A DNA stretch of 64,000 bases. Source: Histomonas meleagridis 2922-C6/04-290x. Lineage: Eukaryota; Protista; Parabasalia. The DNA lies in the NCBI GenBank assembly GCA_020184695.1, contig JAANOX010000218.1:1-64000 (forward strand), read 5' to 3'. Below are positions 5,608 through 60,615 of the stretch, piece after piece; positions within the stretch are counted from its first letter, which is position 1; each line of letters starts with the position of its first letter. A program made the position numbers and the translations under genes. The notes beneath the pieces are model-generated. The model was not told the DNA's origin. It did no database searches and worked only from the letters and a program-made list of their open reading frames with translations.

Positions 5608-7035
5608 ATGCAATGTAACTGGAAAAAAGTTTCTATTCACCACAAAAATATTAGACAGAAATTGGCTCAAAGAGAAGTGTTTGTAAATCCTATTTATGAA
5701 GGTTCTCGGTCTCAAAGTGAAATTGAAGAATTCATTCAATTACTTAATGAAGATTTTAATAATCAATCTTCAGAAAATTTTTCAGAACATCTAACAGAAA
5801 TTAATAAAACCATAAGTGGGTATGATTGTGCATCTCTAGATATGATTTCTACAACGTCATTTGCAAGCTTATTAATTAATGCAGACTTTGAGTTTGCTAC
5901 TGACCTCATGTGCCATGCTTCAATACTTTTTTGTATATCAAATCTTATTAAAACATCACATTTTTCCGAATATTTCTATTCAAATGGAATATTTGAAGCT
6001 GCTTTATCAGGAATTACAAGTGAAGAGAATATGGTTTCATTAGCCAGCCTTCGTATTCTTAGTACACTCATTTATGTTGCTCATTCATATCAGACGAATT
6101 TTAATATGAAAGCATTTCTTGATCAAATTACAGAATGCTCAAAATTATCAAATGCGCATGCTGACTCATGTGCCAGTATACTTTATTCATTCGTGTTGTT
6201 ATATAATTTTGAACCTTATATTGATCAAATCCTAGCAACGATTTGTTATATTTTCGAAGATTCCCAATATGATAGTACATGGGAAAACATTGCATTGTTA
6301 TGTCAATATCTTGTTCATACAGATATTCTTTATTTTAATTGTTTAGTACAAAGGTGGTGTTTACTTGGCGAAATTGTCGATCTTATAAATGATGTTACTA
6401 AATTTGCATCAAATATTTCAACTGTAGTACCAACATTAGATACTATATCCTATGTATTAGAAACAGTTGGACCAAAACAAATTTGTTTTGCAAGACGAAT
6501 ATCAATTTCTAAATATTATGAATTTATACAACATGCGAATTTAGAAATATCGAATTCTTCTTTAAAAATTTTGACTTTATTAATATTATATGGCGATATT
6601 GAAGTATTTCAATATTGCATGAATGAGAATCATAGTTTATTAGACCTTGTTTTTAGTGATATTTTTGATGAAGGTGCACCTTTTTATTATCAGATATCAA
6701 TTGTGGAATTATCTTACGCAATGATATTAAAGAAAGATCTTAATGTGTTTTATAAATTGTTTGATCTTGGTTTCGTTCAAAAATGTTCTTTTTGTTTGGA
6801 TAGTGATGATAATGATTTAATTTTGAAATACGTTGAAATTGTTTTTAATATGTTACAAGCAAGTCAACATACAAATGTAACTTCGTATTTAGTAAATGAT
6901 ATTATTCAAACAGATTTATCTCAAAGGTTCCAGGAATTGATTGATAATATTGATGATGAAGATAATGATATATTCAGATTTTGTGTGGATATTCGCGAGT
7001 TTTGTGAAACGGCAGCAAATGAATTTGAACAATGA
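5608..7035 (+). CDS. ARM/HEAT-repeat (importin-alpha-like) hypothetical protein
   Basis: 475-aa helical, Leu/Ile-rich ORF; N-terminal basic IBB-like stretch. Confidence 0.55.
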   Translation: MQCNWKKVSIHHKNIRQKLAQREVFVNPIYEGSRSQSEIEEFIQLLNEDFNNQSSENFSEHLTEINKTISGYDCASLDMISTTSFASLLINADFEFATDLMCHASILFCISNLIKTSHFSEYFYSNGIFEAALSGITSEENMVSLASLRILSTLIYVAHSYQTNFNMKAFLDQITECSKLSNAHADSCASILYSFVLLYNFEPYIDQILATICYIFEDSQYDSTWENIALLCQYLVHTDILYFNCLVQRWCLLGEIVDLINDVTKFASNISTVVPTLDTISYVLETVGPKQICFARRISISKYYEFIQHANLEISNSSLKILTLLILYGDIEVFQYCMNENHSLLDLVFSDIFDEGAPFYYQISIVELSYAMILKKDLNVFYKLFDLGFVQKCSFCLDSDDNDLILKYVEIVFNMLQASQHTNVTSYLVNDIIQTDLSQRFQELIDNIDDEDNDIFRFCVDIREFCETAANEFEQ

Positions 7036-14442: not shown

Positions 14443-15009
14443 ATGAGTAAAGTCAAAAGGAAAATCCCAAAGGTGATTAAACCAAATGACCAAAGAGTGG
14501 AACTTAATGCTCCAAAGAAGCCAGAAGAAAAAGCACCGGATAATGATGAAAATTTTGTCCCATCAAATTTATTCTTTAGCTATAATCCAGACCTTGGACC
14601 ACCATTTCGTGTTATTGTTGATACAAACATGCTTTGGCAAACGTGTGCAGATAAAATAGATTTGATTGATGGGTTACAGAAATGTTTAGTTGCAAAAGTG
14701 ATTCCTGTTGTTACAGATTGCGTCATTGCAGAATTAGAAAAACTTGGTCGTAAATTCCATTTAGCATTAAAATTAGCAAAGGATCCACGAATACGAAAAA
14801 TTAAATGCGGATGTAGAGGAAATTATGCAGACGATTGCATTGTAGCAATGGTTCAACAAAACAGATGCTACCTTGTTGCAACAAACGACAAGGATCTCAA
14901 GCGAAGAATCCGTAAGATTCCAGGTGTTCCAATTATGTATTTGCATAATAATAAATTCCAAGTTGAACGACTTCCGGATAGTGATTTTGGCGGATCGCGA
15001 AACTTTTAA
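14443..15009 (+). CDS. FCF1: rRNA-processing PIN-domain protein FCF1/UTP24
   Basis: FFSYNPDLGPPFRVIVDTN, YADDCIV, VATNDKDLKRRIRKIPGVPIMY. Confidence 0.95.
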   Translation: MSKVKRKIPKVIKPNDQRVELNAPKKPEEKAPDNDENFVPSNLFFSYNPDLGPPFRVIVDTNMLWQTCADKIDLIDGLQKCLVAKVIPVVTDCVIAELEKLGRKFHLALKLAKDPRIRKIKCGCRGNYADDCIVAMVQQNRCYLVATNDKDLKRRIRKIPGVPIMYLHNNKFQVERLPDSDFGGSRNF

Positions 15010-15044
15010 ATGTCATAAATAAATTTAATATTAATTAATTTTGT

Positions 15045-15438
15045 TTATTGATATACAAATTCATTGAATTTCTGTACAGCAAAATTATATGCAGAAACAT
15101 CTACACCATCCATTACTTGAAATATCAGAGTCGTGATGATAGGTTGTGGTGCAATCTTGAATTAGAAATAAAATATACTGGATGAAGAATACCATAAACT
15201 TGAACTTGTTGTTTTTCTGTAAGATTAAAATTAAAAACATCTGGGATGGAGCATTCAATTTGTGCTTCCCCATTAGTTATGATCATTTTATTCGTGACTA
15301 AATCAATTCTAAGAATCAGAAATAATAAAAAAACTTTCCAAAAACTCTAACTTTTTTCCCACCAAACGCGCCCTTTAGAGCATCGTTGATGGTGACATAG
15401 TGAGCATAATCCTGTGGGTCTGGATTTTCAAGGCTCAT
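15045..15438 (-). CDS. TEN1-like OB-fold protein (CST complex), 114 aa, three exons
   Basis: Exons 15438-15335, 15308-15179, 15155-15045; spliced product MSLENPDPQDYAHYVTINDALKGAFGGKKVRVFGKIDLVTNKMIITNGEAQIECSIPDVFNFNLTEKQQVQVYGILHPIAPQPIITTLIFQVMDGVDVSAYNFAVQKFNEFVYQ; ends TAAA. Confidence 0.7.
15156..15178 (-). other. 23-nt spliceosomal intron (intron 2 of TEN1-like gene)
   Basis: GTATATTTTATTTCTAATTCAAG; TCTAAT branch-like motif next to the 3' AG; removal restores the frame to the MDGVD..AY C-terminus. Confidence 0.75.
15309..15334 (-). other. 26-nt spliceosomal intron (intron 1 of TEN1-like gene)
   Basis: GTTTTTTTATTATTTCTGATTCTTAG; contains an in-frame TGA; removal restores the frame. 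Confidence 0.7.
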
Positions 15439-15849
15439 GAAACAAATTAAACAGGAACTTCATAACGGTTTTATTCAAAAGACAATTTTTTAAATTGATT
15501 TTAATCGTAATTTCTGTCCATCAATCCTTTTAATAAAGGATGCTATTATAGGTAAAGATCCTGAATGTACCAAAAAATCAAAAATTATTTATTATTTCAT
15601 TTTCATTTTCTTCTGATCTTGAATTTTATCTTTATGATTTTGAGCATTATTTCTTTGATAATTATTTCTTTAACATAGACACAATAGTGATATCACTATG
15701 TAACGAAGTTGTATATGTATTTGATTCAGAATACATATTATATTAATGAATTCGCGTGTTGGCATTGGCGTTAATATACTTCAACTGTTTCTATTCCCAA
15801 GCTTAAATTTCCAATTTCTTCATCTTAATTTCCTATTACTAATAAGCGA

Positions 15850-16135
15850 TTAGCACCACAAAATTTTTTGCTGAATCTTTATTGAAATCACTATCAGCAC
15901 ACTAATTGATTTTATTAATGAATATACATTTTAATTTTATGCAAAAAGAAAATGCGCTACCAGAAATAGTTTTAATATTCTTCTTAAGCATAACAATTTT
16001 CAAGTTACTATATTGGGAAAAGGTTGAAAATCAAATTGTGTTTTTTGACAGTCTCAACTCACGACTCCAATCTTAACATTTTCTCCAATTATTACAGTTT
16101 CTAAGTTACTACATTGAGAAAAACACAAGTTCCAT
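15850..16135 (-). pseudogene. BspA-like leucine-rich repeat remnant
   Basis: Fragments CFSQCSNLETVIIGENVK and MLKKNIKTISGSAF fit the TpLRR/BspA consensus; frames broken. Confidence 0.45.
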
Positions 16136-16181
16136 GGAAATAAAAATTTTTTTATTAAAAACACAAACTTACGAGTTATTC

Positions 16182-26719: not shown

Positions 26720-27092
26720 AAGGGTGGACGTTTAGTTCTGAGTTTGAAAAGTATTCAATGGAATACAAAAAAACAAATCACATAAATGCGATCAAAGGAG
26801 AGAGGAATCAAAACAGGGCGACCAAGGTTTCATATTAATGCTGATTTTATCGTGTACGAAGGGCCAGTATGGATGGAATGGTATAAGCTAGATTCAGTTG
26901 GAAACTCCTTAAACTAGATCATCAGACGAAATATATGAACTTCCGGAGGTGGAATATCAAGAACCTCAACCAGAAAATAAACCAGATGAATCACCAAAAA
27001 CAAATCGCAAGCCAAAAACAGAAGGAGAATCAAATCCGCTAGGTACAGAACAATTTTTCGCCATTGAATTCAAGACTCCAAGGCGGGTCTAA
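26720..27092 (+). pseudogene. Unidentified coding-like remnant
   Basis: Higher-GC stretch with joinable frames GRPRFHINADFIVYEGPVWMEWYKLD...SSDEIYELPEVEYQEP...FKTPRRV*, broken by a stop and a frameshift. Confidence 0.3.
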
Positions 27093-44242: not shown

Positions 44243-45088
44243 ATGACAAATAGAGGAAAAATCATTTCAGAAACTGCTTCTCTTTTGTCACAGGTTAAAA
44301 GCTTAGAATTAAAGAGAGACACCATTCGCGAGCAAATTCAAAGATGTAAAGAAATTATTGAAAAACAAAAACATGAAGCATCAACACTCTCGTTATTAAT
44401 TTCATCAACATCTGTTCCTCCATTAAAAGAAACCACAGAAAAAATTTCTTTTCTTAAACAACAGATTTCAAAACATCAAAAACTGCATGAAACATTACAA
44501 AATCAACTAAACGAACTTAGAAGAGCTACAGATGAAGCTATTTATTTACGAGACCAAAAAAAGGAATATGATAAATTATTAGCAGAATATAAAAATTTAT
44601 CAAAGGAATATGACAAAGAAAAACAAAGAGAAAATGAGTTAAAAATTCAAAGCTCCAGACTATCTTCAGCAATTCTCAAGTTAGAACTCTCGAAAAAACA
44701 AATTGAAGCCAAATGCATTGAATATGAATCTTCCGAAAAAATTGACTTAAATTCTCTTCACAAAAAGAACCATTCACTGAGCGAACAAGCTAGACTTCTT
44801 AAAGCCAAACGTGAGCTATTCGAACAAGAAATTGAATTATCAAAACAAAATCTTCTGGTTTCCCGTGAAAAACGGCAAAAAGTCGAAGCTCTTATTGAAA
44901 AATCCAATTCCATTGATATTGATAGCCTTCGCGAACAGCTTTTAGATATGGCGTCAATAAATCTTGAATTGCATAAAATCGAACCGCTTGATAATAAAAC
45001 ATCCCAAAAAATGAAAGAAATCAAAAGCCTTGTTGATTCATGTGAATCTTTGATAAACTTTGCAGGATCTGTTGTTGATGTAATTTAA
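44243..45088 (+). CDS. Coiled-coil hypothetical protein
   Basis: 281 aa, E/K/Q/L heptad-rich. Confidence 0.7.
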   Translation: MTNRGKIISETASLLSQVKSLELKRDTIREQIQRCKEIIEKQKHEASTLSLLISSTSVPPLKETTEKISFLKQQISKHQKLHETLQNQLNELRRATDEAIYLRDQKKEYDKLLAEYKNLSKEYDKEKQRENELKIQSSRLSSAILKLELSKKQIEAKCIEYESSEKIDLNSLHKKNHSLSEQARLLKAKRELFEQEIELSKQNLLVSREKRQKVEALIEKSNSIDIDSLREQLLDMASINLELHKIEPLDNKTSQKMKEIKSLVDSCESLINFAGSVVDVI

Positions 45089-57889: not shown

Positions 57890-59392
57890 ATGTCGCGAGC
57901 TTCAATTCTCAACATCGTTCATCAGACAATAAATGGAAATAGAGACGAAATCGATTTCGCTGCCGGCTTTATGTTAGTGGATCATCTAAACCAAGCTAAC
58001 AACCAACAAGATTTTTCCATTTTTCAAGAAATTATTAAGATCGCTAGAGAAGGAAATAGACAAAAGAAGATTAACTGCATTGCTCTTATAGACATGTTAT
58101 TTAAGAACGGAAACCGTAATTTAATTCAGATACTTCAAACTCCAAATGCAATTTTTGGACTTTCAGATGAACAAATCGTTAATGATCCCGAAGTACATAC
58201 CTTACTTTGTCGTGACGTACAGTCGTGGGTTGATATTTGCAAACAACAAGGAGGAGTTCGCCCAGAATTTATTGATTGGCAAACTAGGCTCTATTCCTTT
58301 AAATATACCTATGTAATGACACAAGAAATCGCCAACAAGTTTGGGCAAGACTTTGCCATTTCCTTTGAGCTTCTTAATGCTTTTACAGATTCCATCATTT
58401 CAGCATCACATCAAGATCTTGGACCTAACTTTCATACCATCCAAGAGATTCTTCCCAACGTCAATGAAATCCATCAACGTCTCAAAGAATTAAAGCCGTC
58501 TATGAAAGATGAATATGCACGAGAAGTTATAGATTTCCTTATCGAATATTGTCTTCTTTGTAAGCAATCTTATAATGACTATCGCCAAATAGGTGAATTT
58601 GATGAGAGTCTTCTTCGTGGAATGGAACATCGTGGAATTCCAAGGCGTCACTCACCACCGCCACAACAACAAATGCCACAGCAGTACCCAGGAATGCAAT
58701 CATATCAACCACCCGGCTCAGGAAGCGCATCATACCCACAGTACCCCGCAGCCCCACCAGTGTACCCGCCGGGGTCAGGAACTTCACCCGGGTACCCCAA
58801 TGGGTCAGGAAGTCACCAAGCGCCACAGCCTCAGCCTCAGCCGCAGCCGGTCGATCCGCAAGCTCCAATGTATCCTCCTCCTATGTACCCACCACCACAG
58901 TTCCCGCAATTCATGCAATCGGGTGCGCAATCACAGCCACCTCAACAGCAACAGCCGCAGCAGCCACCACAGCCTAAGGCTTATGTGGGCGCACAGCCAA
59001 TGAAACAAGCAGAGCCAAAGCCGCAGCCTCAGCCTCCACAACATCAAGCACAACAGCCACAATACCCTGGAATGGGCCAGCAGCAGCCACAACAATATGG
59101 CAATTATCAACCACAACAATCGCAGCCAGCATATAATGGTTATCAGTCACAACAAGCTCCAAAGCCACAGCCACAACAACCACAACAACCATCATACAAT
59201 AGTTACCAGCCGCAGCAACCACAGCCTCCAAAGCCACAGCCACAGCCGCAGCCATCATACAACAACTACCAACCACAGCCACAACAGCCAGCATATAATA
59301 ATTATCAGCCACAGCAGCCACAGCAGCAACAGCAACAAGCTTATGCGCAGTACCTCGGAACAAATCAGTATACCGCGAATCAGTACTTTTAG
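57890..59392 (+). CDS. VHS-GAT domain protein (TOM1/GGA-like) with Q/P/Y-rich tail
   Basis: N-terminal VHS-like (CIALIDMLFKNG), helical GAT-like region, about 250-aa low-complexity tail. Confidence 0.75.
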   Translation: MSRASILNIVHQTINGNRDEIDFAAGFMLVDHLNQANNQQDFSIFQEIIKIAREGNRQKKINCIALIDMLFKNGNRNLIQILQTPNAIFGLSDEQIVNDPEVHTLLCRDVQSWVDICKQQGGVRPEFIDWQTRLYSFKYTYVMTQEIANKFGQDFAISFELLNAFTDSIISASHQDLGPNFHTIQEILPNVNEIHQRLKELKPSMKDEYAREVIDFLIEYCLLCKQSYNDYRQIGEFDESLLRGMEHRGIPRRHSPPPQQQMPQQYPGMQSYQPPGSGSASYPQYPAAPPVYPPGSGTSPGYPNGSGSHQAPQPQPQPQPVDPQAPMYPPPMYPPPQFPQFMQSGAQSQPPQQQQPQQPPQPKAYVGAQPMKQAEPKPQPQPPQHQAQQPQYPGMGQQQPQQYGNYQPQQSQPAYNGYQSQQAPKPQPQQPQQPSYNSYQPQQPQPPKPQPQPQPSYNNYQPQPQQPAYNNYQPQQPQQQQQQAYAQYLGTNQYTANQYF

Positions 59393-59454
59393 TGAGTGAA
59401 TAAACCTCAAAATTGAATTCATTTCGCTCTGTTTGTAATACATTTATTCACAAG

Positions 59455-60615
59455 TTACGTGTTATCGAACGCAATTTTCTTTTTGAAGACTTCGATGTCG
59501 AATTTGCAGTCGCGATGCAAATCAGGAACGTGCCCCCTGACAAACTTTTCGAACTCTTCGAAAGGAACTAACTTCTGGTGGCCAAACCTTGGCGACAAGA
59601 TGATTTTCCCATTAAATCGAAAGACGACAAAAAAAGAATTATCTTTTTTCAAAACTTCGATGACTAAGTAAGAGCCAAATGGCGGCCACATACCATTGAT
59701 ATACCCTAAATACCCTAATGCAGCATTCAAATTACCATCGTGCGCTGACCAATGGATGAATCTCACCGTTGAGTTGCCGTTTATCCGATTCAAAATGTGG
59801 TTCAAAATCTCTGACATTGAAAATCCAAACGATAGAGGATAAACGGTTTCATCGGCGTTGGCTTGTTGCGCTTCTTGAGCCTTAACTCGCTGGATGTCAA
59901 TGATATAATCCCTGTTAATAGGACGAGGTAATTTCATGTCCTCACAAAAAACAGGAACTGTAGCATCTAAATTAAATCGCCATGTCGACCCAAGAATTTT
60001 TGATGCTTGCGACATCATTGCTTTATCTTCATCGGAAAAGTTGACTTTGGACTTAGCTTTTGACATCTTTTCACCAAGGTTGGGACATAAATTCTCAGGA
60101 TTTCGCCATTGATCAAAATCATGATCTGCTGTTTCAATGTAAACTTTTTTGTGGTTTGGATAAAGGCCATCAATAAAATTCATCTGTGAGTTCAAAGTCC
60201 TATGAGTCCATGTGGTACGAAAAAGAATAACAGGTCTTTTATATGTGGAAGGAATGAATTTGAGCTGATTAACATATATTGATCGAAAATAGGAGCCAAG
60301 CTTACGCAATCCTTCGGCACCAGTTTCAATAAGCTGACCAATAATGCAATTTCCAAGTGAAACTGATTTTCCATAACCAATATTAATTTTAATTGGAAAA
60401 TCATGTAAATAACTGTAAGATCGGAGGTTTTTGTTATAACATTTCCATACGTTTGATACATTTTTTGGTATGTGAAGAGAAGTCCTTGCTCCATGACGCG
60501 TGATAACATGAACTTGTATCAAATTAGTGCTTTCAATTTCTTCATATGGTGGATAAGGGGGCTCACATAATGGGTCAACAATTTTCATTGTTATACCCAT
60601 GAGCAAAAAAAGCAT
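59455..60615 (-). CDS. Histidine acid phosphatase (branch 2), secreted or lysosomal
   Basis: VITRHGART, HWSAHDGN, N-terminal hydrophobic signal. Confidence 0.93.
   Translation of the reverse strand: MLFLLMGITMKIVDPLCEPPYPPYEEIESTNLIQVHVITRHGARTSLHIPKNVSNVWKCYNKNLRSYSYLHDFPIKINIGYGKSVSLGNCIIGQLIETGAEGLRKLGSYFRSIYVNQLKFIPSTYKRPVILFRTTWTHRTLNSQMNFIDGLYPNHKKVYIETADHDFDQWRNPENLCPNLGEKMSKAKSKVNFSDEDKAMMSQASKILGSTWRFNLDATVPVFCEDMKLPRPINRDYIIDIQRVKAQEAQQANADETVYPLSFGFSMSEILNHILNRINGNSTVRFIHWSAHDGNLNAALGYLGYINGMWPPFGSYLVIEVLKKDNSFFVVFRFNGKIILSPRFGHQKLVPFEEFEKFVRGHVPDLHRDCKFDIEVFKKKIAFDNT

Follow-up and report, generated by a model that had tools for sequence, protein, structure and literature searches.

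A predicted three-exon gene with two tiny introns in Histomonas meleagridis and its candidate TEN1-like OB-fold product

Gene model and surroundings

The window, i.e. the whole 64-kb stretch of Histomonas meleagridis DNA analysed here, very probably holds a real, spliced, three-exon gene with two introns on its minus strand, as judged from the sequence of the locus and of its relatives. When the minus strand was read from 14700 to 15800 and the proposed exons were translated, the earlier gene model was reproduced exactly. The predicted features are as follows, from 5' to 3' on the coding strand:

15464..15469, minus strand: promoter-like element ACCGTT (M3/Myb-type), 31 nt upstream of the ATG
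15335..15438, minus strand: exon 1, 104 nt; ATG at 15438; 34 codons and two bases of a split Lys codon
15309..15334, minus strand: intron 1, 26 nt, phase 2, GTTTTTTTATTATTTCTGATTCTTAG; GTTTTT...TCTGAT TCTT AG
15179..15308, minus strand: exon 2, 130 nt; last base of the Lys codon and 43 codons
15156..15178, minus strand: intron 2, 23 nt, phase 0, GTATATTTTATTTCTAATTCAAG; GTATAT...TCTAAT TCA AG
15045..15155, minus strand: exon 3, 111 nt; 36 codons and TAA, the next base being A (TAAA)

The translation of exon 1 ends in ...GGKKVRVFG, followed by the two Lys-codon bases. Its frame is closed by an in-frame TGA within intron 1, giving a 40-aa ORF (15316..15438), and the frame of exon 2 continues through intron 2 into out-of-frame sequence. 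The intron lengths of 26 nt and 23 nt are not divisible by three. After removal of both GT-AG segments the exon lengths add up to 104 + 130 + 111 = 345 nt, equal to 114 codons and TAA. The first-pass annotation had claimed that a hidden 114-codon ORF appears when two GT-AG segments are taken out, that neither segment is a multiple of three and that the first contains an in-frame stop; the reading of the strand, the exon translations and the 345-nt arithmetic bear out all three points.

The coding signal was scored as a codon-usage log-likelihood trained on the 29 long ORFs of the window. In the predicted frame exons 1, 2 and 3 score +0.20, +0.34 and +0.25 bits per codon, respectively, and the other five frames of every exon are negative. 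For reference, 40-codon pieces of true genes score 0.23 ± 0.11 and wrong frames -0.79, with no wrong-frame piece at 0.25. Since each exon is positive only in its predicted frame, the coding signal changes frame twice, exactly at the two segments. The GC content is 43, 30 and 32% in the exons, 19 and 17% in the introns, and 23 and 9% in the flanks. A scan of the gene against Rfam gave no match. The TAAA stop context also occurs at 10 of the 29 long ORFs and, by analogy with Trichomonas, may be a motif related to poly(A) addition.

The ACCGTT element upstream of the ATG looks like an M3-type core promoter element at work in Histomonas, a putative assignment by analogy with the M3/Myb-type core element of Trichomonas. 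At a distance of 23-45 nt upstream of the ATG, six same-strand copies are found at five of the 29 long ORFs; from the total of 28 copies in the window one would expect about 0.4. The upstream density at these five ORFs is about 15 times the expectation, and the hidden gene carries one further copy. The upstream copies lie at the following positions:

11470, 15469, 18020, 18038, 22419 and 36052, minus strand: upstream ACCGTT copies
57848, plus strand: upstream ACCGTT copy

The adjacent Fcf1 gene matches WSYJ01000164.1 of assembly GCA_020186115.1 by exact sequence, WSYJ being the Histomonas meleagridis genome project (PMC8529796). The genes called at this locus in GCA_020186115.1 are a kinase, Fcf1, a SEP-domain protein and a CK1-like kinase, and the listing has no gene between Fcf1 and the SEP gene.

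Tiny introns and their conservation in relatives

The type B introns of Trichomonas are described as 23-28 nt long, with a 5' GTWYWD followed by T's and a TCTAAC-type branch fused to the 3' splice site; the branch A lies 6-8 nt from the AG (6 nt in the shortest), and genes of T. stableri contain at most two such introns (PMC6260720, PMC12316389). Both predicted introns of the Histomonas gene run from GT to AG within this length range and begin with GTWYWD, as GTTTTT in intron 1 (26 nt) and GTATAT in intron 2 (23 nt). The branch region is likewise of this type: intron 1 ends in TCTGAT-TCTTAG and intron 2 in TCTAAT-TCAAG, with the branch A, the penultimate base of the box, 7 nt and 6 nt from the end, respectively. 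The resemblance to the type B introns of Trichomonas vaginalis and T. stableri thus extends to length, the GTWYWD donor with its T's, the fusion of branch and 3' splice site, and a GC content below that of the exons. However, the Histomonas box is TCTGAT or TCTAAT rather than TCTAAC, with T instead of C at its last position, the tail reads TCTTAG or TCAAG in place of (H)AACAG, and the host belongs to another parabasalid order. Type B introns outside Trichomonas are not described in the literature searched. The published annotation of Histomonas meleagridis gives 'at maximum one intron' per gene (PMC8529796).

A strict pattern (GTWYWD..TCTRAY N3-5 AG, 20-32 nt), sought on both strands of the window, occurs 8 times, compared with 1.8 ± 1.3 times in Markov simulations. 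Two of the 8 occurrences are introns 1 and 2, which lie 131 nt apart on the same strand at the frame changes and are the sole such pair. The matches at 2893, 14202 and 30034 lie inside open frames and were rejected as introns. The match at 44675-44699 (minus strand) was rejected as well; it has a perfect TCTAAC box but is antisense to the ORF starting at 44243. Two further matches, 6450-6478 and 26914-26940 (both minus strand), are situated in AT-rich stretches with no obvious frame on either side.

Relatives of the gene were sought exon by exon. An exhaustive protein search with exon 3 returned three proteins, namely an uninterrupted protein of 110 aa (P0001), a 31-aa fragment (P0003) and one unrelated repeat protein. 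By BLASTP, residues 7-34 of exon 1 align with residues 4-31 of P0001 (E 3e-6), residues 7-42 of exon 2 with residues 39-74 (E 2e-5), and residues 1-34 of exon 3 with residues 76-109, at 59% identity over the last 34 residues of P0001 (E 2e-14). In the numbering of the spliced protein the three alignments share a constant offset of -3, and the uninterrupted P0001 therefore fits the spliced reading without gaps at both junctions. A 1.6-kb Logan contig (L002) codes for P0001 in one uninterrupted frame. In a DNA alignment L002 has gaps of 26 and 24 columns at introns 1 and 2, so that 26 nt and 23-24 nt are lacking at the two intron sites. L002 is either a genomic contig with an intronless gene or an RNA assembly of a spliced message; the product is supported in both cases.

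A metagenome contig (L003) has three small ORFs in tandem, the last of them being the fragment P0003; the contig can be read as the same gene in three exons, here from a GC-rich genome. In both L002 and L003 the start is kept to within a few residues. In L003 a GTTCTT donor for intron 1 is found at the same split Lys codon, after V-R-V-I-G. With this conserved donor the intron spans 2608-2642 (35 nt), with the acceptor 9 nt further on and no clear TCTRAY box. With a weaker alternative donor at 2617, 9 nt downstream, the intron would shorten to 26 nt and the protein would not have the 3-residue deletion. At the codon boundary of the window's intron 2, L003 has an intron of 24 nt, GTACGAATTTGCTTCTAATGCCAG (..TCTAATGCCAG), which contains an in-frame TAA despite a length divisible by three. 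A further contig (L004), in which the locus is cut by the contig end, has an intron of 23 nt at the same boundary, before the last exon, GTTTTTTTGTTGTCTAATTCCAG (..TCTAATTCCAG). Both differ in sequence from intron 2 of the window, and both end in TCTAAT-NNN-AG. Over exon 3 the four orthologues vary at 16, 8 and 31 of 35 first, second and third codon positions, and exons 1 and 2 behave alike. Third positions being the most variable, the protein is under purifying selection in the predicted frames.

The sources of L002, L003 and L004 are one SRA run (SRR26879376) and two JGI metagenomes (3300042618, 3300042615). The GC content of L002 and L003 is 47-55%, far from that of Histomonas, and uncultured parabasalids are the probable hosts of the three contigs. 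A DM10/EF-hand protein of flagellar type is encoded on L004 as well. The family is small in public data, with four loci among 1.84 billion representatives and 5.8 billion clusters. A word search of the 5.8-billion-protein collection with a 73-aa frame that is free of stops and contains exon 2, the score being taken over exon 2 only, gave no candidates in the length range tested. The same search with P0001 returned only P0001 itself, and with alignment A3 it added exon-sized fragments only; metagenome locus scans with the exon 2 frame and with the exon 3 alignment found no relatives. The MAFFT alignments A1, A2 and A7 (exon fragments with P0001) misplaced fragments and were left out. Alignment A4 was used; it slips by 3 residues where exon 2 ends.

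That the locus has no functional spliced gene, and is instead a decaying pseudogene with intron-like frame breaks or a chance concatenation of ORFs, would agree with the lack of a called gene here in the public assembly. This explanation is very improbable, as the frame breaks coincide with complete intron signals and two other organisms have an intron at the codon boundary of intron 2, of another sequence and, in the 24-nt case, with an in-frame stop. The codon-position-specific conservation and the gene-like codon usage in all exons argue against it too, as does the gapless agreement of the start, the stop and both junctions with the uninterrupted P0001. The claim that a twice-spliced gene had been overlooked by gene calling is strongly supported by these relatives, together with the uncalled interval in GCA_020186115.1.

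Family of the predicted product

Family membership was examined with the orthologue P0001 and with exons taken one by one. In Pfam the gathering scores are 27 bits for Ten1_2 (PF15490) and 23.5 bits for Rep_fac-A_3 (PF08661). The only Pfam match of P0001 is Ten1_2, at 22.9 bits (E 7e-5, below the gathering score), with residues 58-109 aligned to profile positions 62-114; it covers only the C-terminal half of the profile. When residues 40-110 of P0001 were used, Ten1_2 scored 23.1 bits and Rep_fac-A_3 13.6 bits (E 0.086, profile positions 54-101 of 105), both below their gathering scores, so that the latter is about 9.5 bits behind on the same residues. Exon 3 of the window likewise has Ten1_2 as its only Pfam match, at a weak E of 0.18 and 11.9 bits, to profile positions 85-114 of 117, which is the colinear C-terminal end. 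The Pfam scans gave no Rep_fac-A_3 match for full-length P0001, for any window exon or for any L003 exon, and the second TEN1 family, PF12658 Ten1, was not reported for the exons or P0001. Matches of exons 1 and 2 to AGRB_N and p6 were rejected as noise. L003 exon 2 showed a weak OB-fold match to tRNA_anti-codon (E 0.078). Sequence searches of the PDB with the exons, P0001 and two profiles found no relevant match, including no solved Ten1.

An AF2 model of P0001 built from the small alignment A4 is poor, with a mean pLDDT of 50.4. It has a helix at residues 5-18, strands at 25-36, 39-43, 48-51 and 66-73, a poorly formed fifth strand, and a helix at 95-109. A Foldseek (3Di+AA) search of this model against the PDB gave no match at E <= 0.001. 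Ranks 1-4 were taken by S. pombe and human Ten1 at E 2.9e-3 to 6.5e-3. Chains of human and archaeal RPA14 hold ranks 6, 8 and 14 (E 7.8e-3 to 1.6e-2), their E-values differing from those of Ten1 by less than a factor of 4. The entries behind Ten1, namely human STN1, RPA14, YgiW and RMI2 (3mxn_B), all lie within a factor of about 5. In a structure-only VIA search of 48,161 chains with the same poor model, all neighbours were generic OB folds (Z 5.0-6.2). The best small-subunit structure there was Pyrococcus abyssi RPA14 (Z 6.1, rmsd 2.6), and S. pombe Ten1 reached Z 5.0. In the ESM Atlas the search by features placed a plant-dominated TEN1-like cluster second (0.96), as the best eukaryotic neighbour; archaeal RPA3-like clusters stood next to it and formed the largest set, 11 of the 30 neighbours listed. 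By shape, a Ten1_2 cluster was the only eukaryotic entry among the matches listed (TM 0.53). A search of the Atlas with exon 3 alone gave no usable match.

All structural neighbours of P0001 are OB folds, and within the limits of a model of this quality the fold class is supported, but not the finer assignment. The preference of the first-pass annotation for TEN1 over RPA14 held in part. Ten1_2 does outscore Rep_fac-A_3 on P0001 and is the sole Pfam match of exon 3, and the comparison of Ten1 with RPA3 by Foldseek, which it had suggested and which was made on the P0001 model, does place Ten1 first. On the other side, the profile scores stay below their thresholds, RPA14 is close behind in Foldseek, and the structure-only search ranks RPA14 above Ten1, the model being too poor for structure to decide between the two.

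Of the families considered, TEN1, which supplies the small subunit of CST (CTC1/Cdc13-STN1-TEN1), has the best support, and the assignment is made with middling confidence. The predicted product is like TEN1 proteins (PF15490, PF12658) in its size, 114 aa against roughly 100-160, and in its modelled single OB fold with a C-terminal helix; it is unlike them in its sub-threshold score and in matching only the C-terminal half of the profile. As all TEN1 matches are sub-threshold, and as TEN1 and RPA14 are homologous and share the same architecture, family membership falls short of proof. Every test able to separate the two sister families leans towards TEN1, none of them at a curated threshold. 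Several of these tests draw on one and the same signal, which is how similar the C-terminal strand and helix are in amino acids.

A serious contender, though a less probable one than TEN1, is that the same spliced gene encodes the parabasalid RPA3 (RPA14), the small subunit of RPA (PF08661). RPA3 holds the RPA70-RPA32-RPA14 trimer together via its C-terminal helix, and has the same size and the same single OB fold with a C-terminal helix. Small divergent RPA3 proteins are often missed by annotation. To our knowledge RPA3 is universal in eukaryotes, every one of which needs it, and CST is patchy and was lost in many lineages. With RPA3 universal and often too divergent to annotate and CST often lost, the prior counts against TEN1. 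The colinear Rep_fac-A_3 match of P0001 residues 40-110, weak as it is, agrees with RPA3, as do the RPA14 chains close to Ten1 in Foldseek, the place of P. abyssi RPA14 above S. pombe Ten1 in the structure-only search, and the share of archaeal RPA3-like clusters in the Atlas. However, the Rep_fac-A_3 match is weaker than that of Ten1_2 and disappears when full-length P0001 or exon 3 of the window is scanned, and the Atlas matches listed contain two TEN1 sets against no eukaryotic RPA3 cluster. The product may instead be a small OB-fold protein peculiar to the lineage and distinct from both TEN1 and RPA3, for instance RMI2-like, of the SOSS/SSB type, or a shared subunit comparable to Teb3 of Tetrahymena, the one small subunit shared by RPA-like complexes there. 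This would fit the sub-threshold scores in all family matches, the four loci in public data, the presence of RMI2 and other OB proteins among the weak Foldseek matches, and the generic nature of the structure-only matches; but the only colinear profile matches are those to the TEN1/RPA3 pair, whose size and helix-OB-helix layout the protein shares, and such an origin is considered unlikely.

Proposed role and further observations

The gene would be transcribed from the putative M3-like promoter. A reduced parabasalid spliceosome would then remove the two type B introns, which have a TCTRAT branch 6-7 nt from the 3' AG. Translation would yield the 114-aa protein, in which a helix at either end flanks a single OB fold, as in the smallest subunit of RPA-like trimers. 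The steps up to translation are supported by the sequence and by comparison. To judge from the families, the barrel and the C-terminal helix would pair with an OB subunit of STN1 type or, if the protein is RPA3, of RPA32 type. As TEN1, the protein would be predicted to stabilise STN1 and to support recruitment of polymerase alpha-primase for C-strand fill-in and fork restart at telomeres. As RPA3, it would be expected to nucleate the trimerisation core of RPA.

A wider reading, drawn from this one candidate subunit, is that parabasalids keep a CST-type complex whose TEN1 is unannotated because two introns of 23-26 nt, kept in several parabasalid-like lineages, break its frame; in a variant, one subunit would be shared by RPA and an STN1-containing complex as in the case of Teb3, with no separate RPA3. 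This is regarded as improbable. The literature searched contains no paper that links Trichomonas or other parabasalids with Stn1, Ten1 or CST, and in the supplements of PMC12316389 Ten1, OB-fold and replication factor genes are unmentioned among the intron-containing genes. Should the protein prove to be TEN1, then, to judge from the literature searched, no component of CST would have been pointed out in Parabasalia before it. CST-type maintenance of the telomere C-strand would then extend to a deep-branching group of medical and veterinary importance whose telomere biology is almost unknown, and a handle would be available for finding STN1- and CTC1-like partners.

Whatever the family, introns of 23-26 nt of the Trichomonas type appear to be present in Histomonas, a poultry parasite, and a single Histomonas gene can apparently hold two introns, compared with the published maximum of one (PMC8529796). 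Intron positions are kept between distant relatives, while one relative is without both introns. The locus may be of use for an intron-aware re-annotation of parabasalid genomes, in which small essential genes are being missed.

Two other features of the window were noted. At 15900-16170, in a gap of 740 nt that lies upstream of the hidden gene and otherwise has no called gene, both strands carry short ORFs (e.g. ...NIKTISGSAFSFCIKLKCIF..., ...FSQCSNLETVIIGENVKIG...) that resemble fragments of BspA-type leucine-rich-repeat genes and may represent a decayed gene copy. The stretch 58001-60000 has a GC content of 43.6% and a strong negative GC skew, compared with 21-36% GC elsewhere, and overlaps a 500-codon ORF starting at 57890.
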